Assembly (NCBI GenBank): GCA_002269645.1
Contig: NIVC01000346.1
Coordinates: 186,001-250,000, forward strand
Direction of reading: 5' to 3'
Length of the DNA stretch: 64,000 nucleotides
Source of the DNA: Macrostomum lignano
Taxonomy: Eukaryota
Positions 6,198 through 59,179 of the stretch are shown here, one piece after another (position 1 is the first letter of the stretch; every line of letters starts with the position of its first letter). The notes under the pieces were generated by a model. That model was not told the origin of the DNA. It made no database searches and saw nothing but the letters and a program-made list of their open reading frames with translations. The translations under genes were made by a program, and so were the position numbers.

Positions 6198-6544
6198 AAT
6201 GAATCCGGAGTTGAGTTGTTTGACGGAAAAAATTCGATTGAGTCCAGTTTAGCGGAGACGATTTCAATGTTTTAATTTTGACGGAGAGAATTTCTGTTTC
6301 GTGGAGAGGATTTCGATGGTGTTCAGTTTCACGGAGAGGATTTCGATGATGTTCAGCTTCACGGAGAGGATTTCTGTTTCGCGGAGATAATTATGATTGA
6401 TTTCTGTTTTATGGAGACCATTTTGATGGATTTAAGTTTCAAGGAGAGGATTTCGAAGGAGTCCAGTTTCACGGAGAGGATTTCGATGGTTTTCATTTGC
6501 ACGGACAGGATTTCTGCTTCGCGGAGAGGATCTTGATGGATTTG

Positions 6545-17813: not shown

Positions 17814-18824
17814 ATGGACGCTAATGACGTAGTAGAAGCTTTGGCTGAAGGCATTAGAGACAGGCTAGACATCAGGAAGCACATTAGGATCCAAAAGTAC
17901 ACGCCTAATCAAGATATAGACGTATGGATTCAGGCTTTTGAGCAAAGGTGTATCGCAGATGAGATACCTGCAGCCGATTGGAAAAATGAACTACTATCTA
18001 ATCTAGATGTCCAATCAGCGTTTGCTATTGTGACAAGGCTGAATTTAGACCCTAATCTACCGTATGCTGAATTCAAGGATAGGCTCATCGAACGATTCAC
18101 GCATGCGGGTAGTGCTCAAGAAGCTAGAGAAGAATTCCGTAGCAGATACCAATCTAAGACAGAGAGCTCTGACGACTATGCGGAGAAGCTGACAGAGTTA
18201 GCCTATAGGGCATTTCCCCACCTTACTAATGACCAAAGACAGGAAGAAGTGGTGGAACAATTTATTAGAGGTGTTAGGATAACCCCAGAGGCTAAGGAAA
18301 AGCTACTGCTAGCACAGGCGAACACACTCCAAGAGATACGTCGAGTCTTGCGACGTATCGAAATGGCGTATACCATGTCTCGCCGAGGGAGAGATCCAGC
18401 TCAGTGCAAGGCAACTGGAGGAGATGAGGCTGAGAGTAGCTTGAGGGAGTTAGTCCGCAAGCAAGGTGAGACACTAGAAAGCCAGCAGAGGGTACTCCAG
18501 GAGTTGCTTCGACACCAGCAGAGTGCTGAGCAGAAGGCTAGGCAGAAGCCGTACCAAGGCCAGCAACAGGGCCAAGGTCAGAAGCAGCCAGTAAAGTGCT
18601 TCAAGTGTGGGAAAAGCGGTCACATAGCTAAGCATTGCCAGCAGCAGCAGAATCAGCCGCAGTTTCCGCAGCAGCAGTTTCCACAACCACCACAGTTTAT
18701 TCCGTACCAGCCGCAGTACCCGCCGCCGCAGTTCCCGCAGCAGCAGTTCCCGCAGCAGTACCAGAATAAGAATCAGGGAAACGGAGTAGCCGGAAGCGTA
18801 GGAGGCAACGCTTTCCAGAAGTAG
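17814..18824 (+). CDS. gag: Gag (336 aa) with CCHC zinc knuckle
   Basis: W...FE..C gag motif, zinc knuckle CFKCGKSGHIAKHC, Q/P-rich tail. Confidence 0.92.
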   Translation: MDANDVVEALAEGIRDRLDIRKHIRIQKYTPNQDIDVWIQAFEQRCIADEIPAADWKNELLSNLDVQSAFAIVTRLNLDPNLPYAEFKDRLIERFTHAGSAQEAREEFRSRYQSKTESSDDYAEKLTELAYRAFPHLTNDQRQEEVVEQFIRGVRITPEAKEKLLLAQANTLQEIRRVLRRIEMAYTMSRRGRDPAQCKATGGDEAESSLRELVRKQGETLESQQRVLQELLRHQQSAEQKARQKPYQGQQQGQGQKQPVKCFKCGKSGHIAKHCQQQQNQPQFPQQQFPQPPQFIPYQPQYPPPQFPQQQFPQQYQNKNQGNGVAGSVGGNAFQK

Positions 18825-21800: not shown

Positions 21801-22813
21801 AAGTTTTTCACGAATTCCACGATTCACCGTTAGCAGGTCATCTAGGAAGAGATAAAACTTATCAGCGAGTTAAGGAAAGATTTTGGAGAGTAGGATTAGC
21901 TACAGCAGTCGAAAAGTACGTCGCCAAGTGCAAATCTTGTTTAGAAAGTAAATCAAGAAAGCGATGCAAGGCACCAGTGCAGAATTTTCCTATTGTCGAG
22001 CCATTCTCACGCCTTCACATTGATTTGATAGGTCCGATCAGTCAGACTAGCAAATCTGGTAACAAATATGTCTTGTCAGTTATTGACAACACTAGCAAAT
22101 TTCCGTTTGCGTTTGCAATTAAAAATCAGAAGGCTAAGACAGTAATCAAAATTCTGCAGGAGCGAGTTTTCGCCGACTTTGGAATACCTCAGTGGATTCA
22201 CACAGATCAGGGAACACAATTTACAGGGAGAGCATTTAGGAAATTTCTAGACCTCTATGGGATTAGGCACACTAGGACAACAAGCTATCATCCACAAAGC
22301 AATGGGCTAGTAGAAAATTTAAACAAACAAATTAAGTCAATTCTTACCTGTTTGCTCGAGAAAGAACATGCGAACTGGGATGTTCTTTTGCCCGGTTGTA
22401 TAACCGCATTGCGCACCAGCACGCATACAGCCACAGGTTTCAGCCCGCATTATCTTGTGTTTGGAAGAGAGGCCCGGATGCCGAGTGACAATGTGTTCCA
22501 GCAGCCAAAGGCGTTCGCCGATCTGCCTGCTTATGTTCAAGAGCACTTGACTCACCTGCAAGAGGGGCAAGAACTCGCCAAACAGCGGCTCAAATTAATA
22601 CAACGTAAGCGTGAGCAGCACTATTCTAACAAACCTAAACAACCAGACTTACCTATAGGGAGCTTAGTTTTCATTAACAACCCAGTCATCACACAGACAG
22701 AAGCCAACAAGTTCCACAGGAAGAGAAGAGCAGTCTACGAGGTCATAGAACAGTTATCAGAAGTAGTTTACAGGATTAGATTATTAAACAAAAGGCTAGA
22801 AAAGAGGAATTAG
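18770..22813 (+). CDS. pol: Pol polyprotein (protease, RT, RNase H, integrase)
   Basis: LLDTGS, YYQI/YLDD, LDTDASD, HDSPLAGH..C..C, HIDL/TDQG/ENLNK. The listed ORF 18890-22813 starts at TTG, but the frame is open from 18770. Confidence 0.97.
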   Translation, partial: ESGKRSSRKRRRQRFPEVDSQQSVASQPVNSSDSFSVNSELNSLYNSRHAQPFNQSFNQPNIYSQHFSHAPQQQPCSSKQQIKPQNLSEPTKKQNYDPYITGSILNKEVVYLLDTGSNRNILGRETWKHLFTGKNSHLIKQWNNRIVSFTEEPIPIKGSVVIKATFGDFEEEIEFLLCDAEVDNVIGVTFVQQYCNAIDFETGMLTMKQGTRIPLRSTRAKPQVKRIYVAEKTTVPANSSGLVKVRLATGSESNFGVPSVVEPLKSGLKTRAEKVTVVPSLVTLRQGEAYLEVINTSSQEARVPAAALVGMAKPLLASELNYLKDQPEKEQLCQNKNTQFCENIRQVQDKSEDWISEINIGNELTQEQRQKVIEVVKEHSAAFSQHELDLGRTHLVTHEIILKDNNPVQIPARKIPPHWIKEVDEQLDLMLARGIIRPSYSQYSTPLVIVPKKDGSLRLVNDYRALNNKSEYFPYPITNINETFSCLHGASQFSTLDLFSGYYQIALREEDKCKTSFPTLHRGSFEYEVLPMGLQGAPGTFQRCMNLVLKDIAQKFAIAYLDDVIVYSTDFESHLEHLKEVLKRLIQANMKLKAKKCHLFKSELQYLGHVIGKSGIKRDASKLETIRNWPKPKSVTELRSFLGLCNYYRKFVRDFAEVAAPLCELTKKNIKCIQDKWTRIHDECFELLKERMCSEEVLAYPEFNTDPQVYFVLDTDASDVRIGAVLNQVQSDGVERPIAYYSRKMRQSESRYPITRKELLAIVDSLKYFRFYLVGKRFKVRTDHNALTWLLRQTEQTGILGRWIERLSEFDFEIEHRSGPKHVNADALSRIPDPQQDESSPYARSLSCRATVNTDPASAVTVSSGNSAQAETCSLHSGVTSCCSPQNMAPNRHNTPSFSSRLLSKRQEQEPKERHPLVCNALLSDYLRSPVRRENLVAAQLADPALSYVRNLIESDLPKPNFQERLELSHEIRNLLGYYELFRIEDGVLRIDLNLGRTESKVVLPKSLDGEVFHEFHDSPLAGHLGRDKTYQRVKERFWRVGLATAVEKYVAKCKSCLESKSRKRCKAPVQNFPIVEPFSRLHIDLIGPISQTSKSGNKYVLSVIDNTSKFPFAFAIKNQKAKTVIKILQERVFADFGIPQWIHTDQGTQFTGRAFRKFLDLYGIRHTRTTSYHPQSNGLVENLNKQIKSILTCLLEKEHANWDVLLPGCITALRTSTHTATGFSPHYLVFGREARMPSDNVFQQPKAFADLPAYVQEHLTHLQEGQELAKQRLKLIQRKREQHYSNKPKQPDLPIGSLVFINNPVITQTEANKFHRKRRAVYEVIEQLSEVVYRIRLLNKRLEKRN
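18776..18846 (+). promoter_or_regulatory. -1 ribosomal frameshift signal (G GGA AAC plus stem-loop or pseudoknot)
   Basis: Heptamer at 18776-18782 in gag phase; the pol frame opens after TAA 18767-18769. Stem GGAAGCGT (18792-18799) pairs with ACGCTTTCC (18808-18816); loop GAGGC can pair with GCCTC (18842-18846). Confidence 0.8.
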
Positions 22814-22815
22814 TC

Positions 22816-23223
22816 ATGCATAGGGATAATTTACTACCCGTACCAACAGCCGATTACGTTAGTGAGGAAGAAAAGCCAGAAAGCAGTTGTGCCAGGCGAC
22901 CGAAACTTCGAGAAAATGTACCGCTTAATCCGATGTACGAAGCAGCCGACAGTGAGAGTGAACATGAAGATGAAGTGCAGTTTGTGCCAGTGCAGAGTCA
23001 GAATAATGTTCCAGTATCAGTGCAGGATATGCCAGTGCAGGTTATGCCAGTACAAGAAGATAATCTACCAGTGCAAAATAATAATGAGCAGCCAGCAATC
23101 GAAACTAGACCAGTTAGAGATAGACGGGAGCCGAGTAGATTAGCGATAGACCCAGGCCGGAAGAGCTATGTGCAAAAGGTAACGGAGTTGTTTAACCCCT
23201 ACCTGCTCTTCCAGCTCGAATAG
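22816..23223 (+). CDS. Probable C-terminal continuation of Pol after a 1-nt frameshift
   Basis: Adding one A in AGGAAT at about 22808 gives LEKRKLVMHRDNLLP, the usual end of the Gypsy integrase C-terminal (GPY/F-type) module. Confidence 0.7.
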   Translation: MHRDNLLPVPTADYVSEEEKPESSCARRPKLRENVPLNPMYEAADSESEHEDEVQFVPVQSQNNVPVSVQDMPVQVMPVQEDNLPVQNNNEQPAIETRPVRDRREPSRLAIDPGRKSYVQKVTELFNPYLLFQLE

Positions 23224-23227
23224 CATT

Positions 23228-24064
23228 ATGGCTGACGCCCCGGAGCGGGTATACCCAGTCAAGACAATTTACTCGGGAAAGAAAAGAAGAAGAAGTAGCC
23301 CCGATGAAAACGAACAGCCACAAGTACGATCGGTACGAGCAAGAGAAGCAACTGAGAAGCCCATAGAAGTTCAGCAGCGAGAGGAAGTGGACAAGGATAA
23401 AGAGGCTGGAGAGTTGGTTGTAGATCTGAATGGAGTAGACCTGGAGGAGGCAACGAGAAGGCATGATGAGGAGGTGCGGCGAGAACAGGAGGAATTCATG
23501 GCAGCTCTACTGGGAGTAGAATTACCTGAACTCGAGGAAGAGCTCAGCCCGAAGAACGACGCCCCAGCAGAAGTATCGGAACCGCAAGAAGTGCCGGAAC
23601 CTAAGGAAGCGCCGGAGGCGAGGCCGACGACTAATGAGACTCCGGTCGATGTAGCTATCTTCTTCAGGGCCGACACACCGCAGCCACAAGACCTTGCTGA
23701 AAGCAACGAGCAGCCAGGAGCAAGCCCACGAAGTTTCAGGAAGAGTACCAAGGCGCTCAAAAAGTGGCTGCTAAGAACAGGCAGCACTGGCCACTACGAC
23801 CCGGCGGTGCCGCCAGAGTGTACTCGATTTCTGGCCCAGGCCACCGCTGAGCAGAAAGTCCAGTGTATGGAAGTCGCCTGCACGTACGCCCTCCAATATG
23901 CTGAGGATAGGGCTAGGGGACCATTGTCGCCCTTCCAAGTAAGTGAGCATCTCCGGGCCATGGTCGAATTATTCGACCCAAAGGACAGGCGAACCCCCGC
24001 GACTGGCCTCCTTTACCAGTGCTCTCAGCGCGCGCCAACTTGCCGACCGATAGGGCAACTCTAA
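23228..24064 (+). CDS. Extra ORF3 (278 aa) of the retrotransposon, not env-like, function unknown
   Basis: ATG 4 nt after the previous stop; KKRRR, acidic/Pro-rich middle, Cys-containing C-terminal region; no signal peptide or TM segment; lies inside the element before the PPT. Confidence 0.7.
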   Translation: MADAPERVYPVKTIYSGKKRRRSSPDENEQPQVRSVRAREATEKPIEVQQREEVDKDKEAGELVVDLNGVDLEEATRRHDEEVRREQEEFMAALLGVELPELEEELSPKNDAPAEVSEPQEVPEPKEAPEARPTTNETPVDVAIFFRADTPQPQDLAESNEQPGASPRSFRKSTKALKKWLLRTGSTGHYDPAVPPECTRFLAQATAEQKVQCMEVACTYALQYAEDRARGPLSPFQVSEHLRAMVELFDPKDRRTPATGLLYQCSQRAPTCRPIGQL

Positions 24065-27367: not shown

Positions 27368-27921
27368 TAAAGACTGGGATCCTGTTGTGCCCGGGTGCAC
27401 TTGCACCGCTGGGTGAGTGCGTTGGGGAATTTTCGATTGGCTCGGATAGATTTTGTCACACCTTCGTCGTCGTTTCACACATACTGCATCACTGCATCCT
27501 TGGTGCAGATTTTTTCCGTTGCCAAGCAGCCAAGTTGGATTTTGCCAACTTTCAGATCGTCACTTCAGTAGGAACTTTTCCTTTTCGTATGTCTTCTGGG
27601 CGACCACTTCTCTGCCGGATAGTCATTTCGAAATCGGAAACAGTTCCTGCAAATCGGTCTCAAACCATTCGAGCTAAGCTGAGTCGGAGAGGAGTGAAGA
27701 AGGAATTTCGGTTCTTAGGAATAGCAGAGACCCGCTCCCAGACTGAAGGCCACGTGATGCTAGCTAGGTCAATTGTCGTGCCCTCTGCTGATGGTACCGT
27801 CCCTGTCAAGATTACGAATGTGTCGGGAGAACCTGTAGTACTGACAAAAGGAAAGCAGATTGGCTGGTTCTCGCCCGTCCATGGCAGCCAACCAAATCAT
27901 GATGAAGCACCCAAGGCACAA
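27368..27921 (+). pseudogene. Isolated Gypsy pol fragment (protease C-half plus pre-RT spacer) of a second family
   Basis: HHCILGADFF and VMLARSIVVPSADGTVPVKITNVSGEPVVLTKGKQIG; flanked by a 20-bp direct repeat GCTAACCAGGTCTCGCTCGA (27348-27367, 27922-27941). Confidence 0.7.
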
Positions 27922-30900
27922 GCTAACCAGGTCTCGCTCGACAATTGTCACCTTGTCAATTGGTGATTGGCCAACAAGTTGGTTGTTGATAATGCTGTCT
28001 GGCGGGAGACCCTAGGGCTTACGCTAGGCAGCCTAAATAAATAGAGAAATGCTGGCGGTGGGCAGGGTGAGCGTGTGCCCGTTGACACCTGACACTAGAC
28101 TTTACAGAATCAACAAACTTCAATATCGAAATCTCAATACTACTAATTGACGAACTCGCTGCCTTGCTCACCGCCGTGCCGATTGGAAGTCAAAGTAAGA
28201 CTCACGTCTGTGTTCATTAATCATTTGGGTCTCGAGCAAAGAGGGTACCGTACGCTCTAGGGACGGACTGACTGCCTTACCTCGACGCGATCCCACGCTC
28301 AGTAGCGGAGTTAGTCCGGTCAGTGGGCTGACGCCATCTCCAGGCTCGTTCGCTGCAGAACAATCTTAGGGAGCTGTTCGATCACGTGTAGTGACACATC
28401 AGTTATAATGGAACACCTCGACGCTGATTGGCTGAGCCGATTTGTTATAACGCACGTCGAATTTTCTGTTTGGCTGAGCTTCTTGCCACCCAAACTCACG
28501 TGACCAGAAGATCCTATCAGTTCCCTCGGGGCCATAAAAATACGACAGGTGCGGTCATAAATCACTCAAAATCAATGATTTATGACCCAAAAGCCGCACC
28601 TATGTTTTTATAACTACGAGTACTAGTATAGCAAAATCATATAACTAGTATGAATTCTAGGAAAATTACATAAAGAGAAGAAAAAAGGCCCATAGCCTGT
28701 TGTTAGTATATAGTAGGCTAGTAAGTTTGAAGCCCATGTGCGAGCGTGAAGTTTGGAAAAAAGTGCATCCTCATCACATGTAAGCAAGGCAGGGATCGAG
28801 TAGCCGGGGAAGAAAAAAATCAAAGAAAGAAAATGCTCTCGTCTTTTGAAATATTGTACAACAACAGCAGCAAAACACATTGTCAATTACGGTTTTTAGA
28901 AGGCTGCAGCATCATAGCGCGCCTCTGGGCCAGGTCGCGAATGCAGGCCACGCGGCCGACCGAATCCGAGGCGCCGGCGCCAGCAGGCAGATAACGAAAT
29001 GCCCAGTGCGGACGACAGGACTGCCCTCACAGAACGAAAGGTAGCCGAGTCAATACCGCGGCGATGCGGCAGATCCTCGCGGACGCCGGTAACCAGACCG
29101 TCGAGGCAGATGAACTTAGACTGGCAACGCGCACAGAAGCTCCCATCGCCTAGCCTGCAATTTTGTGCCGAGGTGCAAGATAGACAGGCCTGTCATACAT
29201 GTATGTGTCATATTACATGTCGTTCGGCAAGCAGAGGCAGCAGAGCACGACTGGGGTCCAACAACCAGGCCGACATTGATCGCCGCAACAGCAACCAGCT
29301 TTTTAGTCGTCGCTGGGCGCGCTCTCGAGGCGAAGATCGTCGGCTTAGGACGTCAAGTACGCTGATCGCGGGCCTCTTCGGTTGTCGGCGACCCAGAAAG
29401 CCGCAGAAAGTCTTCGTTTGTAGGAAGAGAGAATTATTCACACCACAAAGTCAAGCACAAGAACAAACAATTAAAAGTATCCTGAACTTGAACCCTTTGA
29501 ATCTCTGCCATTGAGTAAAGATCTATAGGTGCATGTGTACGTTACATGTATACTACCGCGGTAGATCTGATCTTCCGCAAACATTTCACAGAAAACAATG
29601 CATTAGCTTTTTTATCGAATTTCAAGCGTCTACAGCCATCACCCTTACTCAGAGGGTCAGCCGACCACCTTACTCCCATATTCACCATTAGTCTGAATAA
29701 AACACTTTCCTCTGTGTTCACTTCTGTCCTGAACTCTGTTTGTTGCCTGGTCTCTTGTCTTTTGAAAAAAATTGAATTCTCTCGTAGCCACAAGAAATTT
29801 CAAAAGTTTATAAACAAAAAAGACAGAATTATTTTATGTGGAATTTTTGCTAGCTACTACACGAGCTAAAAGTCCTGTAATTCGGTTGCAAAGTTATGCT
29901 TTTCACAATAAGCCATCTGTAACGTTTTGTTAGTTAGAAGTAAGTTTAATCCTTATATTTAAATTCAATTTTTTAGACCTTAACTTTGCGCAAGTTCATT
30001 AGCATTTTTTGATAAATACCAAATGTTGGTTTGTTAAAATTGAATAACTTCCAAGAAATTTTATTCATATTTGAACATGTAACTTAAAGTATTTTTGCTT
30101 AATTAGCTACTACTTTAATTACTTTGTGTAACCTCCGACCATGCAGGCCGGTCTTGGTTGGAGGATCAGCCTTCATACGAATGCGACGTCGTTATGTGTA
30201 ATATTAACAAATGAAATTTCCTCCAGCATAACCGTAGCAACCTTTGCTAAGTAAATATATGCTATTGCCATAATTCCAAAGAGAAAGTAGTAGTTTAAAC
30301 TTTAAAGCAACTAAATGTAACTGTAGTTAGTAGAAGCAATCACTCCAATCTACAATGTAATTCAATCAGTGATTGTAGTCACATAAATGGCTTAATTGAC
30401 AGTAAAAATAGGCCTTTACTCATTAGTAGTAGAACTCTTATGAGGGTAGGCCTATAAAAATCAGTGAAACTTTTAATTTGAAAATTATGAACTTAGTTTG
30501 CTAAACAAAAAAGAACATTATGATACTATCTGAACTGAATGCTGACTGTCTTAACTGAATGTCTGACTGTCTAAATATATTATATACTTTGCATTAAAAA
30601 GTTAAACTATATTTTGATAGTTAAAATAGACCTAGTCCTAGGTTTATTATAATATACAGTCTGAATATTCATAACAAGTCATAAATATTTTCTTTGTCTA
30701 TGATATGACTATCATAGACAATAAATACCATCTTAGTTTCTTAAAGCAACTAATAAATTTGGCATCATTTTCAAATAAAGTACATTTAACAGAGAAAAAT
30801 GTTGGCTTTAGACCTAATTTTAGTATATAGGATCTAGATTATTAGGCCTAAGTTTAATCATTTTTGTTTAAAAAAATTTTTTAACTTAAATGTTTTTAAT

Positions 30901-33074: not shown

Positions 33075-33991
33075 GGCCTATAGAGAATATTTGCTTCTAT
33101 AGGCCATAGATAGGAAAATGGCATATATGCTAAAAATTTCTAGGTTAGGCCTTATACTTTAAAAATTGGCATACATATTAGGGTATAAAACCAAGATGGC
33201 CATAGCTGGGATAGGGTTCACAGAAAATGACAACTGGTTTACTATTAGATAGTGAGGTGGGGGGTGGAGAAAGAAAAATAAAATTTGAAGTTAGGTTTTC
33301 TTCAAAACCAGTCAGCGTTGCATTTGCACAAGTAAATCTAGAAAATCATGCAGACAAATCACAATTGATATAGTATACTATATCAATCTTCAATAGCCCC
33401 TCTGTTAATTTAACAACAGATAGTATAATTCTTTACCTCATATAGCTCTTTATAACCTATAATTTCCTTTTTAAACTAAGACTAAAACAAGCTTTCCTTG
33501 AAGTTTGCTTCTAGAAGACTAAAGACAAAAAATTAATGTATCAAAAGATTGTAAGTATCTACCACTGAATTCATTTTTGAAAAGATATAACAAATAAAAT
33601 TAAGTGACAAAAAGAAATAACTAAGAAAAATGATAAGATTGGAATGGAATCATTGTGGAATGGAATAAAAAAGGTATAGATTAGAGCAATGTTAAATCTT
33701 TGCTCAATAGTCAAACTTTCAAGCCATAGACTCAAGGCAGCAGTTGTCTTGAGTATAGCACTCTGCCACTCTGAATTAACTCAATTGCTCATCAACTCAA
33801 ACTGACTTCATAAAGCTGTGTTATATTATGATTTTTTGTTAAAATTACTTATTACAAAACAAGTTGAAACCCATCTCACAATCAAGTTTTTTTTTCAATT
33901 CTCAATGTATATTTGTCTGAGATCTTACACTAAGTATGAGTTAGCTTTGATTTATTGGCACTCAATTGATTTATTGCTGCTTGATTTCCAG

Positions 33992-36371
33992 CTGGTCCCA
34001 GAGAAGCAGCAACGCCAGGCAGTTGCAAGCTTGCTGCACTGGCTGGCCAGCTGCTATCAGCTTGATGAGGCAACTCTGACTGAAACAGCTGGTCAGCTCT
34101 CCAGTCTGTCAGATGGTCAGCTTCGCGACCTGTTGGCTGCAGCGACTGCTGCTAATGAAGTCTGTTTGGACTCTGTGCCACCATCCATACCCACCAGTTC
34201 ATGCTGCATTCCACTGCCTATCAATCTTAAACCGCGACTGCTGGTTTGTCGCCTGCGTAGATGGACAGATTTGGATGACAATTCAGAGGAACTGTTACGA
34301 GTTTGTCGATGCAGTGTAGAAAATGGGAATGCCAATGGTAACTCTTCAAGCGAGCCTGCTACTGAGAGTACTAGCGTAGGTGCTGGATTTGATGTCTTTT
34401 GTTGGTAAGTTGAATATCAACTTTCCAAGAATATCAAGAATAGCCCATGCCCTTGCTATGTTTTGGCCGTCTCAAAAGTTTACTCAAGTAGCCTATTTAG
34501 CTTTGTACTAACCGAGGCCATCTCTGCTTAACTTTTGCCCAAATCAGGTTTCATCAGGAAGATTGTAAAGTCTATGAAAGTACTGTATATTTGCAAGTTT
34601 TTTAGAGCATATCCTAATCATACTACTTTTGTGGCCCATGCAGTCAGTAGTCTGGGTGGTTTCGTTTGAATCATGGTGTCATTTGGTATCCCAGGCCTAA
34701 AACCTCAGTGTTAAAATGAAGTTTGGTGGATATCAGTGCCATATTTCGAGCTCCAATGGGGGTTGTAGTCTTAGTGGTGAGAGCGTCGGACTCCCGGCTG
34801 AAAGGTCGGGGGTTCGATTCCCGATCCCTGTCCAAACAATTTGTGTCCTTGAGCAAGACACTTAACTCTGCATTGCTTCAGTTCACCCAGCTGTAAAATG
34901 GGTGCCAGCATCAGCTGGGGTAATTGAGGGTGTGTGGCGACCCCCCCCCCAGTTCTTGGACTGAACAGCCGTACGCAGCCTTTTCATTTTCGCTAAGGCA
35001 GGTAATACGGCATATTGGCAGTAGTATAGTGTGCGTTGAACAGTAGTGAATTTATTTTTTCCAATCAACTGCACTGCAGCGCCAATCCCATGCACTACAC
35101 TCGCCGGGTCTGGTGCACGGCTTTCTATTACGAACTGAATAATCGGGTTGGCGATGCCTTCAAGGCGAGCGAGCCCTGCCTGCGCATTGACGGCGGCGGT
35201 GGCGGCAGCTTTGATCGGGTCGGTCGCCGAAGGTTTTGCCTGGCGCCGCTGTGGAATGCCGACAGACCGGCGGCGGCCCATGCGGTGCGCCGGTGCATTG
35301 GTCAGGGCCTGCTGCTTCAGCTGTGCCGCGGTGGCACCGTCTACCTGCAGTGTCGATCGCCAGTGCCCGTGAGCGCCTTTATTGTTAGTTGCTAATGTAT
35401 TCGTGTTGCTAAACTTTACGTTTTACGGTTTAAAGGGTTCTAATTTGGGTTTTTACTGAGTTCTAATTGGGGTTTTACTGGATTTTAATTAAGGTTTTAC
35501 TGGATTCTAATAGTGGTTTTTCCTGGGTTCTAATTGGGGTTTTGCTGGATTCTAATTGTGGTTTTACTGGGTTCTAATTGGGGCTTTAGTGGGTTCTAAT
35601 TGGGGCTTTACTGGGTTCTAATTGGGCTTTTACTGGGTTCTAATTGGGGCTTAAAAGGTTCTAATTTGGGTTTTTACTGAGTTCTAATTGGGGTTTTACT
35701 AGGTTCTAATTGAAATTTTATTGGGTTCGAATTGGGGTTTAAATGGTTTTAATTTGGGTTTTTACTGAATTCTAATTGGGACTTTAGTGGGTTCTAATTG
35801 GGGTTTTTACTGGGTTCTAATTAAGGTTTTACTGGGTTCTAATTGGGGTTTTGCTGGATTCTAATTGTGATTTTATTGGGTTAAATCTAAACCAAATTTT
35901 GGTTTAGATTAGGTTCATGTAGTTAGAATTTACTGGGGATAGACTTAATGATTCCCATTTTTATTGAATGGCTTCTAAATTCTATGAATCCATGATCTAT
36001 ATGGGCTGATTCACTAACTGCATCAATCAACCCACTCCGTCCACTCCAACCCTCAGGTCTTTGTCCAGTCGCCCAACGCCAGTCTGCAGCGCGGCTGGCA
36101 CCCCGCCACGGTTTGCCGGGTGCCCCCCGGTGGCAGCCTGTGCGTGTTCTCCGACCAGCTCTTCCTCCAGCACCTGTCCGACTGTAGGCGCTTTGAAGAT
36201 GCCTACAGCTTGATCAGAATGTGCTCGATTCGGATTTCATTTGCCAAAGGTTGGGGCAGCGACTATCGTAGGCAGAGGATCACTGCCACGCCTTGTTGGC
36301 TGGAGATTGTGCTGGCTAGGCCGCTTGTTTGGCTTGACCGAGTTTTAGTTGCTATGGGCGGGCCCAACTGA
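33992..36371 (+). CDS. smad: Divergent R-Smad-like gene; exons 33992-34404, 35080-35368, 36057-36371 (338 aa visible; start exon not found)
   Basis: MH1-like AVASLL..GQLRDLL..CCIPLP..PRLLVCRLRRWTDL..FCCANPMHY. MH2 WCTAFYYELNNRVG, FVQSPN..GWHPATVCRVPP, KGWGSDYRRQ..TPCWLEI..PLVWLDRVL. GT-AG sites with matching phases. Confidence 0.85.
34758..35030 (+). mobile_element. tRNA-derived CORE-SINE in Smad intron
   Basis: A-box-like GTCTTAGTGG, B-box GGTTCGATTCC (34811-34821), CORE-like TGTGTCCTTGAGCAAGACACTTAAC...CTGTAAAATGGG. The 3' end is approximate. Confidence 0.75.
35437..35885 (+). repeat. About 22-bp minisatellite TTCTAATTGGGGTTTTACTGGG in Smad intron
   Basis: Direct reading, about 20 diverged copies. 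Confidence 0.9.
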
Positions 36372-37458
36372 CGGGCTATTATGGTTCTACTACTGTTAAT
36401 AACGCTAATAGCACCGCAGACACGATTCTGGGGAGCATGCATGTTTCATATATGAATATGAAACTCTATGCTCTATGAATATCAACAGAGCTATTAAGCA
36501 AGGCACAACAAATCAAAATATAAAAATTGGGTCGTCTTACACCACAAAAAAGTTCCGTGAAAATTTTCAATTCTAATTTACAAAATCCAGGGATGCTATG
36601 GTGTGTGTGAGTGTGCTATGTCAAAACACAATGATTGTGTTATTAACACATTTGTTTTTTTTGCAATATTACACTTTCGTTTTATTTGTCCTACTTTGTA
36701 GTAGCATCTAATGCTTGACTTTTAATTTGCAATTATTTACTTTGTTTTAATTAGTTACAATTTACTTCGAGTACATGTAATTGACTAATTTTTCGGCTGC
36801 ATTGAATGCAACTCTGTATAAACATATCTGCACATGTATGCTTCGATCATGTATTACCTGAAGTGGCTGTCTGCATTTCCCTTGAATCAGCTTACTCTCG
36901 GCTCAATATTCGTCTTTTCCCACGAGTCTTTTGCCAATCTGCTTGTTTTTCTCTCACAACTCGTTGCGCCATCGCAAGATTTCTACTTTTATCAGTCCAA
37001 TGATTTTATTGTGGGTTTTAATAACGAAATAAATGACGCCTTAAATGCATACGTTTTTAATGTATATATATGCTTGCAAGCTTTCCAGTCTTTGTATTTC
37101 CATAAGTAATATTCAAAATGATATAATCTTAGCATATTTTAGTTTTTTAAAACTGTGCAAGTTGTAGCTGTTGAAGAAATTTCTTGAACAAACCGGAACT
37201 GTATTACAGTAGGCCTAGCGCAAAGAGATAGTGAATATCGTTGATGAGAGGGATAATTATTGAATAGCATAATTTTGCTACACAGCTCTTCAATGTAATT
37301 TTTTTTTAAAACCTGTTTTGTTTAAAGCATATTTACCACATATTATTGCAATCAAGGACTTACTCAAGTAGGACGGCAGACTGTTTCTTGCAAAATTTTC
37401 GGAGGCAGTTGGTAGAATAAAAAAAAACCTTAGAATCCCAACTTTCTAAATAAATAAA

Positions 37459-37684: not shown

Positions 37685-40262
37685 CTATATAGTTACGAGC
37701 GTATCCTTAGAATTGTCGAAATCATTCAGCTGTTTCTTGCTCCATTGACCCTGAACAATGCCAAAGCATTCGATCCATCTTTTCAAGCAGTTTTCTTTCG
37801 TCGATCCGCAGTCTCCAACAATGAGGCATTGGAAAGATTGGCTGCTGCTGCTGCTTTGATGTCGGCTTTGATTTTTTAGCGGCGCCAAACTTAGTGTTCC
37901 ATTTGCGTAAAACAACACCTGTGAGCCTTGTTGGGTAAATCCGTATCCCATATCTGACGGAAGTGAACCAACAGGAAAACTGCCCTTGGTTCCGAAGTAA
38001 TTGTACCTTTGCGGAGCAGCTGCCGGCATGTAACGGTACCACAGTTTTCGGTTGCGCGGTCTGGCAACCAACCTGCATCCCAATTGTCCACTTTCACCAC
38101 AGTCTCTGATGCAAAAAAATGGCGTTGCTGGTGTCACTAAAATTTTACGTTGAAATTTGCAGTTAAGTTAGACTTTCTACAGCTGCATACGGATTAATCT
38201 AGAATCTTTATTCTCTTTTACAATCACTTACTTCTCGTGCAAAAATAGTCTGGCTCGCATGAACACGGTCACATTTGGCTCGGGCACAAACAGAACCTCG
38301 ATTCCGTCAGCCGTGCTCACACCGATGAAGGAGCCAGACTCTCCCGTCACGAACGCGACCACAGACCGGTTGAGCACAGCCGACACGAGCACCGGAGTGT
38401 GCGGATTCCGGTGCACAGACGCCAGGTTGAACGAGCCCACACGGAAGTGGTACAGAATCCGCAGCGAGCTCACCGCGATGCTGCTGGGCAGGTCGGTCGT
38501 GTGAGCTGCAATTCGATAACGATGTAACGATATGAGCACAGCTGCAGTCACACACTGCATGGGCACAGCTGCAGTCACACACTGCATGGGCACAGCTGCA
38601 GTCACACACTGCATGGGCACAGCTGCAGTCACGCACTGCATGGGCACAGCTGCAGTCACACACTGCATGGACACAGCTGCAGTCACGCACTGCATAGGCA
38701 CAGCTGCAGTCACGCACTGCATGGGCACAGCTGCAGTCACACACTGCATGGGCACAGCTGCAGTCACGCACTGCATGGGCACAGCTGCAGTCACACACTG
38801 CATGGGCACAGCTACAGTCACGCACTGCATGGGCACAGCTGCAGTCACGCACTGCATGGGCACAGCTGCAGTCACGCACTGCATGGGCACAGCTGCAGTC
38901 ACGCACTGCATGGGCACAGCTGCAGTCACGCACTGCATGGGCACAGCTGCAGTCACACACTGCATGGGCACAGCTGCAGTCACACACTGCATGGGCACAG
39001 CTGCAGTCACACACTGCATGGGCACAGCTGCAGTCACGCACTGCATGGGCACAGCTGCAGTCACACACTGCATGGACACAGCTGCAGTCACGCACTGCAT
39101 GGGCACAGCTGCAGTCACGCACTGCATGGGCACAGCTGCAGTCACACACTGCATGGGCACAGCTGCAGTCACGCACTGCATGGGCACAGCTACAGTCACG
39201 CACTGCATGGGCACAGCTGCAGTCACGCACTGCATGGGCACAGCTGCAGTCACGCACTGCATGGGCACAGCTGCAGTCACGCACTGCATAGGCACAGCTG
39301 CAGTCACGCACTTCATGGGCACAGCTGCAGTCACGCACTGCATGGGCACAGCTGCAGTCACGCACTGCATGGGCACAGCTGCACTCACGCACTGCATGGG
39401 CACAGCTACAGTCACGCACTGCATGGGCACAGCTGCAGTCACGCACTGCATGGGCACAGCTGCAGTCACACACTGCATGGGCACAGCTGCAGTCACGCAC
39501 TGCATGGGCACAGCTGCAGTCACGCACTGCATGGGCACAGCTGCAGTCACTCACTGCATGGGCACAGCTGCAGTCACGCACTGCATGGGCACAGCTGCAG
39601 TCACGCACTGCATGGGCACAGCTGCAGTCACGCACTGCATGGGCACAGCTGCAGTCACGCACTGCATGGGCACAGCTGCAGTCACGCACTGCATGGGCAC
39701 AGCTGCAGTCACGCACTGCATGGGCAAAGCTGCAGTCACGCACTGCATGGGCACAGCTGCAGTCACGCACTTCATGGGCACAGCTGCAGTCACGCACTGC
39801 ATGGGCACAGCTGCAGTCACGCACTTCATGGGCACAGCTGCAGTCACGCACTGCATGGGCACAGCTGCAGTCACGCACTGCATGGGCACAGCTGCATTCA
39901 CTCGTGACTTCTTACCCTGCTGGAACTTTGCCAGCCTCCGCCTGTTCACAAACGAGTCGCATTGGCCGTGTCCGTACAGCCATGCAGTGAGGAAGGCCTC
40001 GGCAGTCGCCAGCAGACACCAGCGATGCTCACCGACCATGCTGGCAGCTGCACAGCTCTCTGTTGTGTGACAGCTCAGCACGCAGCCAGCGATGCTACTG
40101 TCAAGCAGTTGATGAAGCGCCAGCCTCCTTACTCCTCCAGTAATAGAGAGCAAGAGACGGACAGGCGCGCAGTCTTTCGTAGTCAGTTATGCCTATGGTA
40201 TCCGCCGAAGAGCCAGAGAGGTAGCAGCAGCAAAGGGCGAAGTATGCAATGAGATTTTTCAT
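37685..40262 (-). CDS. Secreted protein gene with PAN/apple-like N-terminus; exons 40262-39916, 38505-38232, 38105-37685; frame break in exon 1
   Basis: Signal-peptide-like MKNLIAYFALCCCYLSGSSA at 40262; SIAGCVLSCHTTESCAAAS..CLL in the +1 frame. GTAAG donors at 39915 and 38231, CAG acceptors, phases 1 and 2 consistent to TAG at 37685. Confidence 0.6.
38536..39899 (+). repeat. 27-bp minisatellite GCACAGCTGCAGTCACGCACTGCATGG, about 50 copies, filling an intron
   Basis: Direct reading; lies between donor 39915 and acceptor 38506 of the minus-strand gene. Confidence 0.95.
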
Positions 40263-44024: not shown

Positions 44025-44801
44025 TCAGTCGAATGGCGCCACGCACAGGCACAGCACGGCAGTGGCGCGACTGTCAGAGCTCGGGAGATCAGTAAGCCGC
44101 TCCGGTCTGTCCTTGAAGATGGCGATTGCGTTATCAGAGTTATAGTTATCTGGCTGACCATCGGCCCACAGTTTGGTGGCTACCGGATGGCCACAGGTGA
44201 CCCACGTCCATCCGCCTGACGGCTCCGCACTGCCGGGCTGCTGCAGACCGCCGAGCCACACGGAGGTCTGCGGCGACAGCAACTCGCTACGCACCCGGTC
44301 CAGGTGGCTCAGCTCGGCGAGGTCAGCAGCGTCGGCCATGACGACGAGACCGGGCTCGGACTCGCACCTCAGTCGGCTCTGCTCCCAGTTCCCGGAGCCG
44401 CTGTACGCCATGTACTTTACTCCGCACCGGCCGTGGCCGAAGCTGTTCGGACACAGCGAGCCGGACGTCAGACCCGACCGCTGCTTGACGAACAGCCGGC
44501 CGCGCTGCGAGCAGCCGCAGTCCGAGCGCACCGACCGGCTGCGGGCGTTGAACACGAACAGCCGGCAGGCAGTGGAGCCGCCGTCCGGAGCCCCGAACGC
44601 CTGGCAGCGCGGGTTGCGGCTGCAGAGAGCAGCGCACTTGAAGGCGCTCTGGACTGCCGGATGCGTCTCGACAAACTCGTTACCCACGCACAGGACGGCT
44701 TCGATGGCTTTGTAATTGCTGCTGATGTCGGTAGCGCAGACGAACAGCAAGCCGACTGGCAGTGAGGCAAGCAGGCACTGTGGCAGCACAAGCTTGCGCA
44801 T
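44025..44801 (-). CDS. Single-exon secreted PAN/apple plus C-type lectin protein (258 aa)
   Basis: Hydrophobic N-terminus; SAFKCAALCSRNPRCQAF..CRLF (PAN); WEQSRLRC..VWLGG..WTW..WADGQPDN (CTLD). Confidence 0.85.
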   Translation of the reverse strand: MRKLVLPQCLLASLPVGLLFVCATDISSNYKAIEAVLCVGNEFVETHPAVQSAFKCAALCSRNPRCQAFGAPDGGSTACRLFVFNARSRSVRSDCGCSQRGRLFVKQRSGLTSGSLCPNSFGHGRCGVKYMAYSGSGNWEQSRLRCESEPGLVVMADAADLAELSHLDRVRSELLSPQTSVWLGGLQQPGSAEPSGGWTWVTCGHPVATKLWADGQPDNYNSDNAIAIFKDRPERLTDLPSSDSRATAVLCLCVAPFD

Positions 44802-45338: not shown

Positions 45339-46080
45339 GCTCATTTTAGCGCCGCAGGCACTCATTTTGGCGCCACAGGCACTCATTTTGGCGCCGCAGG
45401 CACTCATTTTAGCGCCGCAGGCACTCATTTTCGCGCCGCAGGCACTCATTTTAGCGCCGCAGACAACTCATTTTAGCGCCGCAGGCACTCATTTTAGCGC
45501 CGCAGGCACTCATTTTAGCGCCGCAGGCACTCACTTTACCCCCACAGGCACTCATTTTGGCGCCGCAGGCACTCATTTTAGCGCCGCAGGCACTCATTTT
45601 GGCGCCGCAGGCACTCATTTTAGCGCCGCAGACAACTCATTTTAGCGCCGCAGGCACTCATTTTAGCGCCGCAGACAACTCATTTTAGCGCCGCAGACAA
45701 CTCATTTTAGCGCCGCAGACAACTCATTTTAGCGCCGCAGGCACTCATTTTAGCGCCGCAGGCACTCATTTTAGCGCCGCAGGCACTCACTTTACCCCCA
45801 CAGGCACTCATTTTGGCGCCGCAGGCACTCATTTTAGCGCCGCAGGCACTCATTTTGGCGCCGCAGGCACTCATTTTAGCGCCGCAGACAACTCATTTTA
45901 GCGCCGCAGGCACTCATTTTAGCGCCGCAGACAACTCATTTTAGCGCCGCAGACAACTCATTTTAGCGCCGCAGACAACTCATTTTAGCGCCGCAGGCAC
46001 TCATTTTAGCGCCGCAGGCACTCATTTTAGCGCCGCAGGCACTCATTTTAGCGCCGCAGGCACTCATTTTGGCGCCGAAG
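45339..46080 (+). repeat. 21-bp minisatellite GCACTCATTTTAGCGCCGCAG, about 35 copies
   Basis: Direct reading with recurring GACAACTC and TTTACCCCCACAG variants. Confidence 0.95.
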
Positions 46081-47208
46081 GCGCTATATATTGGCGCCCT
46101 GAAGAAAAATTATTGATTACTACAACGAGCCACAAGGTGGGGTGGGGGGACAAAGCATTGGCATGTCCCCCCCAGAGCTTTTACTGGAGGGAAATGTCCC
46201 GCCCCCCCCCCGGTGACGACGCGCCTGCTTACACCTAGAATACCGGGGAAGAAACCACCTGCATGTAGAGAACATTTACATACAAGATTAGATCCACACA
46301 CGGGCAGATTTTCGTATAAGGGTAGAATATACATTCTTGCAGTTATCTTTAAACGATCCAAGTTTTTCAAACTTTAAAAAAATTCCTGTTTTTGCTTCTG
46401 ATATGCTGGAGATAATTCAGCTCTACCAAAAAGCAGTGAAATGCTCTCCTAGAAAAATCTTTTATTAGCATTTAAACCCCAAAAGGTTAAAGAAAGCTTT
46501 TATGCACTGGAGTTTAATTTTTTTGCAACTTAGTTAATGGACTAGAGCGTTATGGACAAGCAAGCATACAAATATTAGAGATTTAGTATATTTAGATATT
46601 CAAAGAATATTCCATGTTCTGCCGTCATATTCTATTTACGGTCTGCTTTCTTCTCCAAGCCTCTTTGTGTGCTCAGTGCTCACTTTGCGACCCCCCTGGC
46701 TAGTACAAGCTTTCCTTTTGTGTAATGTGTAAACCCTCTTAAGTTCGAAGGCGGCAATCTCATTCTGTCTGCCAGCCCACGTACAGCCCTTGAGTACATT
46801 GACAGCCAAATAAGAACTTAGCCCCTGACCTTTCATTGTACTGTGGCTATCAACTTTCTAATAAATTAAATTGGTCTCGTTTGAGTTTCATAGTTGCGTT
46901 TTTTAAAGCATTTGTCCTATGCTAATGTGGATTGGCTTTAGTCAAGGGCTCAAGTAAAGAAAAGTTGGTCCGCGAGCGCAAACCCACCCCCAGGTTGAGG
47001 GGGGGAGGGTGCTCTGGTGTGGCAGGGCTCAGTCAGAATAATAGAATACACCGCTCTACTTTCATTCCATTTGCACAGTGGAAATTTCCGGGAAACCTTC
47101 CACTGTAGACGGCCAACGCGGGACAAGTTAATATATGTATATAACCAGACTAGAAACTGGAATTCTTATTTTATAGGGTGCTACGGAACTCAGTGAGGCC
47201 CGCCAGCC

Positions 47209-50200
47209 ATGGCAGTGAGTTACGCAGCCAAGATCTATACGAAAGATCGGCTATTCTTCATCAAGTTGCTGTTCCGCTGGGCCGGCAGTGTTTGGCAGTT
47301 GTTGTGGGTTGACTTCCTGGTGTTCGTCGCTTTGTACGTATCACTGGCGGTGCTGTACCAGCTAATCCTGTACAATGACGCCAAGATGAAGGCTACATTC
47401 GAGGTCACAGTGAGCTGGTTGAAAACTGTCAGCACATCCGTGCCGCTTTCGTTCATGCTCGGCTTTTTTGTATCGTCCGTTGTGCAACGGTGAGTTGCTT
47501 TATATTTAATTTTTAAATATATATTCTCGTAATATCGATGAATGTAGGAGATATTTGAAACAGCTTTTGTGCTTTGAATTGTTTTATTTTTATGTTAATT
47601 CTAGATCTCATAACCTACTGTAATATTGGATCGAACCTTGACAGCTTTTAAGGTCAATATAAAAAAGAAGATACTGCATATTTTGTTTTACTTGACACTT
47701 AAACATTTTTGTGCACTGAAGGGTCACATGACCGCTTCATGAATAAGTTGTGCATAAATATAAATATTTTTATATTCTAAGTGATTTATGCTATTCACAA
47801 TGCTTAATTAGCCAAACTGCATGCCCCAGTGACCCAGTTGAAATGGTAAAAAAAAGTTATAAGAAATACACAAAGGTCGCATGCTCTAATGGATTTTATG
47901 AAAGTAATCCCGATTGCTCCGTAGAATAAAGTATATATAAAATGAAAGGTTCCTCCAGTTAATTTCGGCGCGTAAGTTCACATACCCTCAATAATTAAAA
48001 TATAACAATATCCGCTTGATTGAACACCCCTTCAACAGCTGGTGGTCCGTCTGCATGTCCATACCATGGGTGCAGACTCCTTCATTCTACTGTCAGGCCC
48101 TCCTGGACAGCCCGAAAGCCAGTAGGAGCGATCTGGCCAGAAAGTTGCGAATCACCGTGCTGAGGTACCTGAACCTGGCCTGGATCCTCATGATGGCTCG
48201 GGTGTCGCTTCACATCAGAGAACGATTTGGTTATTTCGAACCGAAAAGCAAAACTAAGAAGTTCAAGCACACGTGGAAACGGCGTCTAAAAATGGTCAAC
48301 TCGGACATTAAAGTGCAGAAATATTTTGGCCAGCTGGTTACGGACAATGAGGTGCTGGCATTCGGCCGATCTGCTCAATTGTCAAGCGAGAACAAGCATT
48401 CTTACGACCCGGAGTACTGGCTGCCGCTGGTGTGGGCCACCCGGCTTATTCGCAGGGCTAGGAACTTGGGTGAGTTTTTGTGTTTAGTTCTGTGACAACC
48501 TTAATGTCAGCTAATGTTTTAGCCGATTAGGTCTGGACTCGCATTGTTCAAATTTTAGCATCAAAAACGGTACATTTCTTGTCACAGTAGTGTACAAGTG
48601 CATTTTAGGGTCTCAAGGAGGTAGTAGCACTTTTTGGGATGCTTGGATTGTGGTTGTGGGACTGACACTTCTGGTTCTGCGACTGACACTTTGGGTTTAG
48701 GGACTGGCACGTTGGGTTGTGGGACTGATACTTTCGGTTCTGGGACTGACACTTTGGTTGCTTGGACTGACACTTTGGGTGCTTGGACTGACACTTAGGG
48801 TGCTTGGACTGACACTTAGGGTGCTTGGACTGACACTTAGGGTGCTTGGACTGACACTTAGGGTGCTTGGACTGACACTTTGGGTTCTGGGACTGACACT
48901 TTGGGTTCTGGGACTGACGCTCTAGGTGCTGGGGGCGCATCGATAACTAGTGTGTTTGGTTGTCACGGCCACCAATTCTGTGATGAGGCCTACCATTCCC
49001 TACCCCTCATCCAATCAAGGCAGAACAGCATTTTTGTCCTAAGATACGTTCTGCTTGAACAGAAACACAAGTGATATTTTAATATGTATTCATCCGTCAG
49101 ATTGCATTGCTAACGAAAGACACTGCCTGTGGCTGATGGACATTGTCCAGAAGTTTCGGTTTGATCTACAAAAGATATGGATGTACTCAGAGTTCAACAT
49201 CCCGCTAGTGTACACTCAAGTGGCTGTTACTGCCGTCTACCTTTACCTAGCGTGTACCATTGTCTCAACCCAGCTGATGGACTCCGACATTGTGCAGAGC
49301 AGCACCGCCACTTTCAACGTAAATGGCACTTACAGTCGTACCACGGGACAGCAGGTTCTTGCCTTCATTCCCCTGCTTGGAGGACTCGAATTTATTTTCT
49401 ACCTCGGTGAGTAAAAATTATGGAGGCCTTGTGAGAGCTAGAACTCGTTTAAGTCTCACGAAAAAAACCACGTATCGACGCATTAATTTGGGGTTTGCGC
49501 ATGAAAACCGGTCCAAAGGCTGTCGTGCTCGTAAAGGCAAACGTGCGATGCGCAGAGCATGTACATTGTCATGAGCTTAAGGATGAGAAACTTAGGACGC
49601 CTGTGTACGTAACTGTGTGCTTGTGTGTTCTCAGGGCTCAGCAGAATGACCTTACCATGACTGCTTGACCTGCCCGTTGAAAATGTTATCGTGACAAGGG
49701 TTGCTAGAGTCGTTGCAAACAGCTCAAAGTAGTGACTCTAGCGAGCCTGGGTCGACTATTGTGACTTTTTAATTACTAAAACGGCTGTAATGCTTCGGAG
49801 AGGCGAATGTTGAGTCACGAGCGCATTAAGTGAGTTGTAGAATCCCAAAAGAGTCTCGGAAAAAGTCGTCCAAGTGTGGTTGTGTTCGCGATTAACTTTC
49901 TACTGACTCAAGCACACTGAATATGGTTGTTATAGGAAGCAAAAATGCGAAATGCGATTCAAATTCATGGAGTGACGCAGATGCAACTCAGTGAATCTAA
50001 AGCGATTATAGCACGCCTGAGATACGATTCTACGACCCATTCTAGAAGCGCAGGCAACAAAACGCCTCAACTGACTCTTAGATGACTCTGACGACTTTTT
50101 GTGACTTGTACCGTGATATTTCTGAGCCTGCAACGACTCTGAATTGACTTTAGGGCGACGCAAGTGACTCTGGGTTGCTTCTTGGCCTAGGTTCTGTTAT

Positions 50201-58476: not shown

Positions 58477-59179
58477 GTAGACTGCAGTCAGGTACTCCGC
58501 TGCACCCACTGACCTCGGACACGGACCGGACACCGCCCATGATTGCCGGATTTCAACTCTGGGACTCAATCTGAATATTTGTAGTTGCTAACTATGTACT
58601 TTATTGTTGGCTGAAATATATAATATTAACTGCACTGGAATTAATTTTGTACCTGAACAAATTACTACCGACAAAAACTTAAATCTTTTTCGAGTTTTGA
58701 GTTCAAATTTTTTAATTCATTAGCATTGGTATATGCGGTCTAGAGACCCGCAGCTTTGATACATTCAAGCTGAGCAATTTACTCAGCTTTTCAAGTACTC
58801 ATTTACTAAGGCAAAACATTTGCATTGCAGCAAGCAATAAAATTTACATCCATTTTTTTATAACATCAGTGCAAAATGGGAAGACTTACTCGACATACAG
58901 AAAGTTTATTTAGCAGCAACGCTAAAATCGAAGGCTCATTTTAGGTATGGATCCAGCTAGTCACAAAATGACTCAGTAAAATCATGAGCTGGTGTGTAAA
59001 CTAATGAATAACAATTAGTGTTAGTGAAGTGAATTCTAGCTTTAAAAAACATGATCGAAAAAATGCATTTAATGGGAAGGGAGTAATACATTCCACACAA
59101 TTTAATAGTCTCTGATTGATGGAAAATGACAGAAGTCTCGCATCATGATTAAAACTTTCATTATACAAAACAAACGGAA

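Follow-up and report, generated by a model that had tools for sequence, protein, structure and literature searches.

A three-exon Smad gene and its transcript

The stretch of Macrostomum lignano DNA analyzed here, hereafter the window, comprises 64,000 nucleotides (positions 186,001 to 250,000 of contig NIVC01000346.1, assembly GCA_002269645.1) and carries on its forward strand, at 33,992 to 36,371, a gene for a cut-down member of the Smad family of signal transducers, which we call Smad-variant. When its three exons are read from the DNA and spliced in silico, they form a single open frame of 338 codons plus a stop. The 338-amino acid (aa) product matches GenBank PAA85125.1, a "hypothetical protein BOX15_Mlig013894g2, partial" of M. 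lignano, with 100% identity and 100% coverage. The locus is a real gene, already annotated although uncharacterized, and it adds a new structural variant to the Smad family but does not amount to a system of a new kind. We hold the identity and the reduced architecture of this Smad with great confidence.

All parts of the gene lie on the plus strand. Exon 1 (33992..34404; codons 1-137 plus 2 nt), bounded by an acceptor AG at 33990-33991 and the donor TG/GTAAGT, encodes three predicted helices followed by a degenerate MH1 remnant. Intron 1 (34405..35079, GT..AG, phase 2) is followed by exon 2 (35080..35368; acceptor CTGCAG/C, donor CCC/GTGAGC), in which the end of MH1 (CANPMHYTRRV) is fused to the start of MH2 (WCTAFYYELNNRVG...). 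After intron 2 (35369..36056, GT..AG, phase 0), exon 3 (36057..36371; acceptor CCTCAG/G, stop codon TGA at 36369-36371) encodes the second half of MH2 with GWHPATVC, the L3 loop GSDYRRQRITATP, and helix 5 (PLVWLDRVLVAMGGPN). The MH2 domain (residues 148-338), delimited by Pfam PF03166, scores to Smad2/3 structures, and an AlphaFold2 (AF2) model, thus spans 35108..36371 and is split by intron 2. A signal scan suggests a probable 3' untranslated region at 36372..37033, ending at the sole AATAAA within 1 kb (37028-37033). The first-pass annotation of this DNA, made by reading the sequence without database searches, had the start and end of the gene exactly, whereas it placed the starts of exons 2 and 3 with an error of about one base.

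Both introns contain repeat-like sequence. In intron 1, at about 34756-34835, there is a tRNA-like stretch with A-box- and B-box-like motifs (TAGTGGTGAGAG…GGTTCGATTCCCG), which is probably the head of a short interspersed element; searches of the introns of the Smad gene with Rfam and ARAGORN found no match to a tRNA or RNA family. In intron 2, a 22-nt tandem repeat (GGGTTCTAATTGGGGTTTTACT) is present in ∼20 copies at 35435-35882 and accounts for a 68-nt length difference in one of the gene copies described below (g1). An antisense open reading frame (ORF) at 34883-35281 was discarded as a by-product of the GC-rich exon.

Two near-identical copies of the gene, g1 and g3, are found on other contigs of the same assembly, which makes three copies in all and is consistent with the redundant, polyploid nature of the Mlig_3_7 assembly (PMC5730564). 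Identity among the copies is 98.3-99.5% for exons, 97.3-99.9% for introns (97.4-99.3% for intron 1), and 98.7-99.4% for the probable 3' untranslated region, with indels in introns and none in exons. The stop codon is common to all three, the final residue being Asn in the window copy (GGPN-stop) and Ser in g1 and g3 (GGPS-stop). Downstream in the window, a bestrophin chloride-channel exon is located at 48016-48495 (plus strand; Pfam 2e-13), within a gene at ∼46-52 kb, and a 566-aa bestrophin gene also lies ∼12 kb past the Smad gene in g1 and g3. This shared neighbor indicates that the Smad copies arose by segmental or genomic duplication, and not as retrocopies.

The Mlig_3_7 gene set was assembled from RNA-seq (StringTie/TACO) and not ab initio, its gene ends were cut at mapped spliced-leader (SL) and poly(A) sites (TBONE), and its ORFs were called by TransDecoder (PMC5730564). 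This annotation holds exactly the same three-exon coding sequence (CDS) in all three copies, which points, as indirect evidence from an RNA-seq-based gene set, to a spliced mRNA. The spliced transcript on which the first-pass annotation had relied thus underlies the public gene model.

In all three copies, the public CDS, flagged as 5'-partial, begins at the base right after the hexamer TTCCAG (33986..33991, plus strand). An open frame runs from the first base of the exon, with codon 142 as its first in-frame ATG; there is none in the preceding 141 codons, and 11 out-of-frame ATGs come before it in the mature mRNA. This missing start codon had been overlooked by the first-pass annotation. The M. 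lignano SL is a 35-nt sequence with a terminal ATG (CGGTCTCTTACTGCGAAGACTCAATTTATTGCATG), and trans-splice acceptors in this species read [T/C]TNCAG at the junction (PMC8629364). TTCCAG fits this motif and directly adjoins the CDS in the three copies, which makes it a candidate SL trans-splice acceptor, and the terminal ATG of the leader, when joined at 33992, is in frame with CTG GTC CCA.... That a flatworm SL AUG can serve as initiator is documented in a passage of PMC9851317 citing Cheng et al. 2006. The Smad-variant mRNA would start by SL trans-splicing at the TTCCAG acceptor (33991), with a junction reading ...TTATTGCATG joined to CTGGTCCCAGAG at 33992, and the terminal AUG of the leader would supply the initiator Met of a 339-aa protein (M-LVPEKQQ...GGPN). 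As judged from these sequence features, the start codon is probably donated by the SL, which would account for the lack of a genomic start codon in a frame that is otherwise intact. A search of about 14 kb upstream of 33992 for a Smad-like N-terminal exon returned noise matches only.

Words identical to parts of the SL (ATTTATTG, ACTCAATT, and ATTTATTGC) cluster at 33950-33977, just upstream of the acceptor, and were rejected as a signal because each occurs at chance level in the AT-rich window. The canonical Smad2/3 paralogue Mlig017485 is likewise annotated as 5'-partial (CDS 6001-8457 of its locus sequence). A CAG acceptor lies 12 nt before the annotated start and would also bring the SL ATG into frame (M-SLASLIGGAPHSSSVKRL); a further database model for the sister gene begins at that same point. 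Many "partial" CDSs of M. lignano may therefore be complete spliced-leader ORFs (slORFs).

Reduced domain architecture and an R-Smad-like MH2

Compared with receptor-regulated Smads (R-Smads), Smad-variant is shortened at several points. In exon 2 (35081-35152), CCANPMHYTRRV-WCTAFYYELNNRVG is contiguous, NPMHYTRRV at the end of MH1 being followed directly by WCTAFYYEL of MH2, just as the first-pass annotation had reported. Because this junction is within one exon, no linker can be spliced in there, and the Pro-rich linker with its PY and SP/TP sites is absent from the protein. The C terminus (...LVAMGGPN; PLVWLDRVLVAMGGPN) lies seven residues short of the end of aligned R-Smads (e.g. TYVCSSMS) and has no SSXS/SXS phospho-acceptor, again in keeping with the earlier reading of a stop at MGGPN. 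The proviso that an alternative last exon might restore the motif found nothing to sustain it, since the 9.9 kb downstream contain no ORF ending in [STC][ST]xS-stop.

The MH1 domain is the most degenerate part. Its helix 1 is missing and, in the MH1 alignment, the DNA-binding β-hairpin RSLDGRLQVSHRKG falls opposite a short INLKP stretch, and KKLKK, which resembles a nuclear localization signal, falls opposite LHWLAS. Both replacements had been proposed from the sequence (the first as INLK) and both are there, but the loss of the hairpin is not special to this gene. The two canonical Smad2/3 paralogues of M. lignano (Mlig017485 and Mlig016086) have normal linkers and SSMS/SSIS tails and yet no hairpin (CVTAAVAQGDPEPGHVTACRLWRWPDL), so its absence is a trait of the activin/transforming growth factor-β (TGF-β)-type (AR-type) Smads of this species, not of Smad-variant alone. 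The Pfam MH1 score is 24.5 bits, against a cut-off of 25, and covers profile positions 54-101 only. By hhalign, residues 79-146 match positions 82-129 of the MH1 profile, i.e. its C-terminal half, with 95% probability (E=2e-8), and Cys/His residues occupy the zinc-ligand positions in the alignment, as in R-Smads. No MH1 structure was matched in a sequence search of the PDB. AF2, run on a 38-sequence alignment, predicts three helices in residues 1-57 with a predicted local distance difference test (pLDDT) of 64-72, and a pLDDT below 50 for residues 54-145.

Comparison with Mlig017485 offers a hint of how the linker was lost. This gene also has three coding exons, with its whole linker of ∼95 residues inside exon 2, and exon 2 of Smad-variant resembles this exon minus the linker. 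Intron positions differ, intron 1 being 11 nt apart and intron 2 at a different site. On both sides of the linker, exon 2 of Mlig017485 carries the same 10 nt as a direct repeat, GCACTACACC (about 6790-7080 of its locus sequence), which encodes HYT...HYT. A deletion between these repeats is a possible, although unproven, route to clean in-frame loss. The residues that follow HYT in Smad-variant (RRV) look as though they come from the MH1 side, and the deletion breakpoints therefore cannot be fixed.

The MH2 domain, by comparison, is well formed. Pfam PF03166 matches residues 148-320 with E=3.7e-48, over positions 2-173 of the 174 in the profile, and in the AF2 model residues 150-338 have a pLDDT >90 apart from the L3 loop. 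In a phmmer search of the PDB, this domain scores 204 bits with Smad2/3, 189 with Smad1, 175 with Mad, 100 with Smad4 (matched in two stretches only), and 62 with Smad7. The domain is 51% identical to each of the two M. lignano Smad2/3 paralogues, 49% to SMAD3, and 48% to SMAD1, and the figure falls to 39% for SMAD6, 36% for SMAD4, and 30% for SMAD7. Beyond M. lignano, the best database matches are Smad2/3-type proteins with ∼50% MH2 identity (1e-58), SMAD6 appearing only at 1e-19. The R-Smad-like motifs quoted by the first-pass annotation (GWHPATVC, YRRQ, PLVWLDRVL, and YYELN) are all present, which bears out its assignment of the domain.

Phylogeny agrees with these scores. In neighbor-joining trees of 32-33 taxa (191 columns, 1000 bootstraps), the inhibitory Smads (I-Smads) are monophyletic to the exclusion of Smad-variant in 100% of bootstraps, and Smad-variant falls inside the R-Smads in about 78-81%. 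The three copies form one long branch (0.49). A larger neighbor-joining tree of 200 Smads was discarded because it grouped long-branch sequences with zero support. By sequence, Smad-variant thus either derives from R-Smads or resembles them, and is not an orthologue of Smad6/7; it is a fast-evolving paralogue of the receptor-regulated Smads, nearest to Smad2/3. The independence from Smad6/7 proposed at the outset is in this way upheld, but the Smad6/7-like motifs on which the same note remarked have a lesser meaning. The strings SIRISFAKGWG, IGQGLLL (211-217), and CWLE are real and letter-for-letter those of SMAD6. Residues matched exclusively, however, number 14 for SMAD6, 13 for M. lignano Smad2/3, and 12 for Fasciola Smad2, and SIRISFAKGWG differs by a single substitution from SIRISFVKGWG, the pattern of flatworm R-Smads. 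We read these motifs as chance or mild convergence, and not as a sign of ancestry.

Functional residues of MH2, whose roles in SMAD3 numbering we take to be those described in the Smad structural literature, are largely in place. The trimer-interface residues D175, R189, and D328 correspond to SMAD3 D258, R268, and D408 (Smad4 D351, R361, and D537). Helix 5 (PLVWLDRVLVAMG) is present, including the equivalent of W406. The basic phosphoserine pocket is kept as R255, K298, Y304, and R306 (SMAD3 K333, here Arg, K378, Y384, and R386), and the L3 loop GSDYRRQRITATP carries the AR-type Arg at the position of Smad2 R427 (SMAD3 R385). In contrast, Smad6/7 have a gap or Gly at the equivalents of D258, R268, and D408 and no helix 5. 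A protein that keeps these interface residues and helix 5 looks able to oligomerize like an R-Smad or a Co-Smad.

A putative competitor of activin/TGF-β-type signaling and its alternatives

Smad-variant thus shares with AR-type R-Smads (Smad2/3, Smox) an MH2 that is 49-51% identical, as well as their oligomerization and pocket residues, while differing from them in the absence of the SSXS motif, the linker, and MH1 helix 1. In the absence of SSXS, the type I receptor could not phosphorylate the protein C-terminally. It would probably still dock on activated activin/TGF-β-type receptors, trapping them, and/or enter complexes of phosphorylated R-Smads and Smad4 as a subunit. Complexes formed with a protein lacking hairpin, linker, tail, and the KKLKK signal would be non-productive or altered. 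A constitutive, non-activatable competitor or modulator of activin/TGF-β-type signaling is in our view the best explanation of these features, with about an even chance of being right, and an inhibitory role specifically has that chance or slightly less. The origin of such a competitor independently of Smad6/7 is supported by the phylogeny. More speculative is the full scenario, which we put forward tentatively and as rather unlikely to hold in every part: a new inhibitory or modulatory Smad made straight from an R-Smad by in-exon linker deletion and tail truncation, wholly dependent on an SL AUG, which would poison Smad trimers or trap the type I receptor and would not recruit Smurf in the manner of Smad7.

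There are partial precedents for such a protein. Engineered tail-less R-Smads behave as dominant negatives; like them, and like R-Smads with the 3S-to-A change, Smad-variant has an R-Smad MH2 without receptor phosphorylation site. A natural case is Smad8B, which has no SSXS and is a dominant inhibitor of bone morphogenetic protein (BMP) signaling (PMC10167241). Smad8B is, however, a splice isoform from which 47 MH2 residues are deleted, whereas Smad-variant has a diverged locus to itself and keeps a full MH2 while missing the linker and most of MH1, and in its case inhibition is only putative. By analogy with these proteins, a decoy function is plausible.

Several observations weigh against this reading. 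Among the 95 MH2 positions that are invariant in the sampled canonical AR-type and BMP-type R-Smads, 27 are altered. These include cofactor-surface positions (the equivalents of SMAD3 Y324 and N339, i.e. Smad2 Y366/N381), and the second specificity determinant of L3 is changed from T to R, so that binding partners may differ from those of Smad2/3. Bootstrap support for the place of the protein within the R-Smads is low, the M. lignano Smad2/3 pair coming out as its sister group in no more than 5-8% of replicates. GC content at third codon positions (GC3) is at background level in exon 1 (0.43) and AF2 confidence is low there, suggesting that the N-terminal part may be poorly constrained. Trans-splicing at 33992 is deduced from the start of the annotation and the acceptor motif, and the gene name Mlig013894 is not mentioned in the searchable literature, including the supplements of five M. 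lignano papers. Finally, a dN/dS (ratio of replacement to silent substitution rates) analysis among the three copies does not reject neutrality (p=0.17-0.31), although 15 substitutions (9 replacement and 6 silent) give it no power. The dN/dS check proposed by the first-pass annotation, as run among these copies, thus supports neither direction.

These points are the natural ground for the foremost alternative, in which Smad-variant is a transcribed but decaying duplicate, an R-Smad copy that lost linker and tail and is now drifting, its protein having no selected role. In its favor are the altered invariant positions in MH2, an MH1 that is mostly unrecognizable and predicted to be disordered, the background GC3 in exon 1, a genomic frame without a start codon, and a dN/dS among the copies that is indistinguishable from 1. 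Orthologues are missing as well: none turned up in 5.8 billion clustered proteins, nor in an exhaustive phmmer search of 1.84 billion representatives, whose best matches were 48-51% identical in MH2 only. As a control, canonical Smad2/3 was used as query; it found no congeneric sequence either, and its next best matches were arthropod Smads (46-51%). The missing orthologues are therefore uninformative, and we make no claim of restriction to this species.

Other evidence speaks against decay. Because dN/dS was powerless with so few substitutions, we replaced it with a test of how conservative the replacements are. All nine are conservative (BLOSUM62 ≥ 0), which has a probability of P=0.0013 under random mutation of the CDS. 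The 1017-nt frame is free of stops and frameshifts in 3/3 copies at ∼50% protein divergence from any relative, and indels among the copies are confined to introns. GC3 reaches 0.71-0.73 in exons 2-3, compared with an intron GC of 0.36-0.45; it is 0.855 in the canonical paralogue. The open frame at such divergence, the confidently folded MH2, and the high GC3 of the exons encoding it argue for long-term constraint, in line with the retention of the MH2 core, the Cys/His at zinc-ligand positions, the trimer interface, and the basic pocket. We consider a decaying duplicate unlikely, and a dead pseudogene unlikely as well. The view of the first-pass annotation that this is no pseudogene, argued from an intact frame over three exons, is strengthened by the frame being kept in three copies and by their exclusively conservative replacements (P about 0.001).

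Somewhat less probable still is that Smad-variant is an MH2 adaptor that acts positively or outside the pathway and is not an inhibitor, either Smad4-like or akin to proteins with an MH2 alone, e.g. Drosophila Expansion or the DAF-14-type Smads of nematodes. Like the Co-Smads (Smad4/Medea), it is tail-less, keeps the equivalents of D351, R361, and D537, and has a pocket that could take the phospho-tails of R-Smads. In addition, the PDB search also touches an MH2-only protein (4r9p, E=7e-4). However, its MH2 is far nearer to R-Smads than to Smad4 (204 vs 100 bits; 36% identity to SMAD4), and it has neither the Smad4-type insertion and activation region nor an intact, hairpin-bearing MH1. Among flatworms, the MH1-less AR-Smads SmadA and SmadC of Echinococcus are established signal transducers and, with DAF-14-type Smads, offer a parallel, i.e. 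lineage-specific reduction of the N-terminal half and an MH2 that is ∼50% identical. Unlike Smad-variant, these proteins keep the phospho-acceptor (…CTSVS) and a long N-terminal/linker region, and are receptor-activated. The sequence does not discriminate a positive from a negative role.

It is improbable that the gene model is an incomplete version of an ordinary R-Smad, with missing 5' sequence (helix 1 and Met) or alternative exons that would restore a canonical protein. The 5' "partial" GenBank entry and the lack of an in-frame ATG before codon 142 would fit, but extra exons repair neither a linker gap within one exon nor a stop right after GGPN. The searches upstream and downstream recovered neither a Smad N terminus nor an SSXS ending, and in 3/3 copies the first CDS base directly follows a consensus trans-splice acceptor, with the SL AUG in frame.

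That Smad-variant is simply the M. lignano Smad6/7 orthologue is very improbable: with the I-Smads (Smad6, Smad7, and Dad) it shares the absence of SSXS, a degenerate and hairpin-less MH1, a presumably non-activatable MH2, and the few SMAD6-identical motifs, but its MH2 is only 30-39% identical to theirs and lies outside their clade, it keeps helix 5, GWHPATV, YYELN, and the interface Asp/Arg residues that I-Smads are missing, its exclusive sharing with SMAD6 is not above that of other divergent Smads, and it has neither a PY motif for Smurf recruitment nor a long N-terminal region.

Genomic surroundings and significance

The remainder of the window is rich in repeats and mobile elements. An apparently intact Ty3/Gypsy-type long terminal repeat retrotransposon occupies 17814-24064 (plus strand), with a gag containing a zinc knuckle at 17814-18824, a 1307-aa pol (reverse transcriptase, RNase H, and integrase) at 18890-22813, and two further ORFs without Pfam match at 22816-24064. 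A retroelement-like ORF is found at 27385-27966 and a mariner/DDE transposase relic at 53898-54494 (plus strand). Satellite arrays comprise a 23-mer repeated 117 times (13536-16185), a 27-mer repeated 51 times (38532-39901), and a 21-mer repeated 35 times (45340-46082). Several frames of the 27-mer array are free of stops on either strand, and spurious ORFs of 440-523 aa result. Blocks of the same short tandem repeats are found again and again at 4393-4480, 11017-11104, and 12540-12627, and at 6233-6543 and 8675-8829; these blocks in the first 13 kb, together with a strong GC skew at 6-10 kb, indicate a locally duplicated, purine-rich repeat region. Two other ORFs are an ankyrin-repeat ORF at 59145-59549 (plus strand; Ank_2, 3e-38) and a Cys-rich 258-aa ORF at 44025-44801 (minus strand) without Pfam match.

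For genome annotation, Smad-variant would be a clear case of a GenBank "partial" ORF that owes this label only to an SL-supplied start codon, which points to a systematic annotation issue for the M. lignano genome. For the family, all three AR-type Smads of this species are hairpin-less, which adds to the evidence, together with Echinococcus SmadA and SmadC, that flatworm activin/TGF-β Smads work without direct contact between MH1 and DNA. If the protein is made and is inhibitory, Smad-variant would be nature's own version, encoded by a gene, of the dominant-negative tail-less R-Smads built in the laboratory, and inhibitory Smads would then have evolved twice, by independent routes. The idea can be tested directly in M. 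lignano, a regeneration model that is open to transgenesis and RNA interference.

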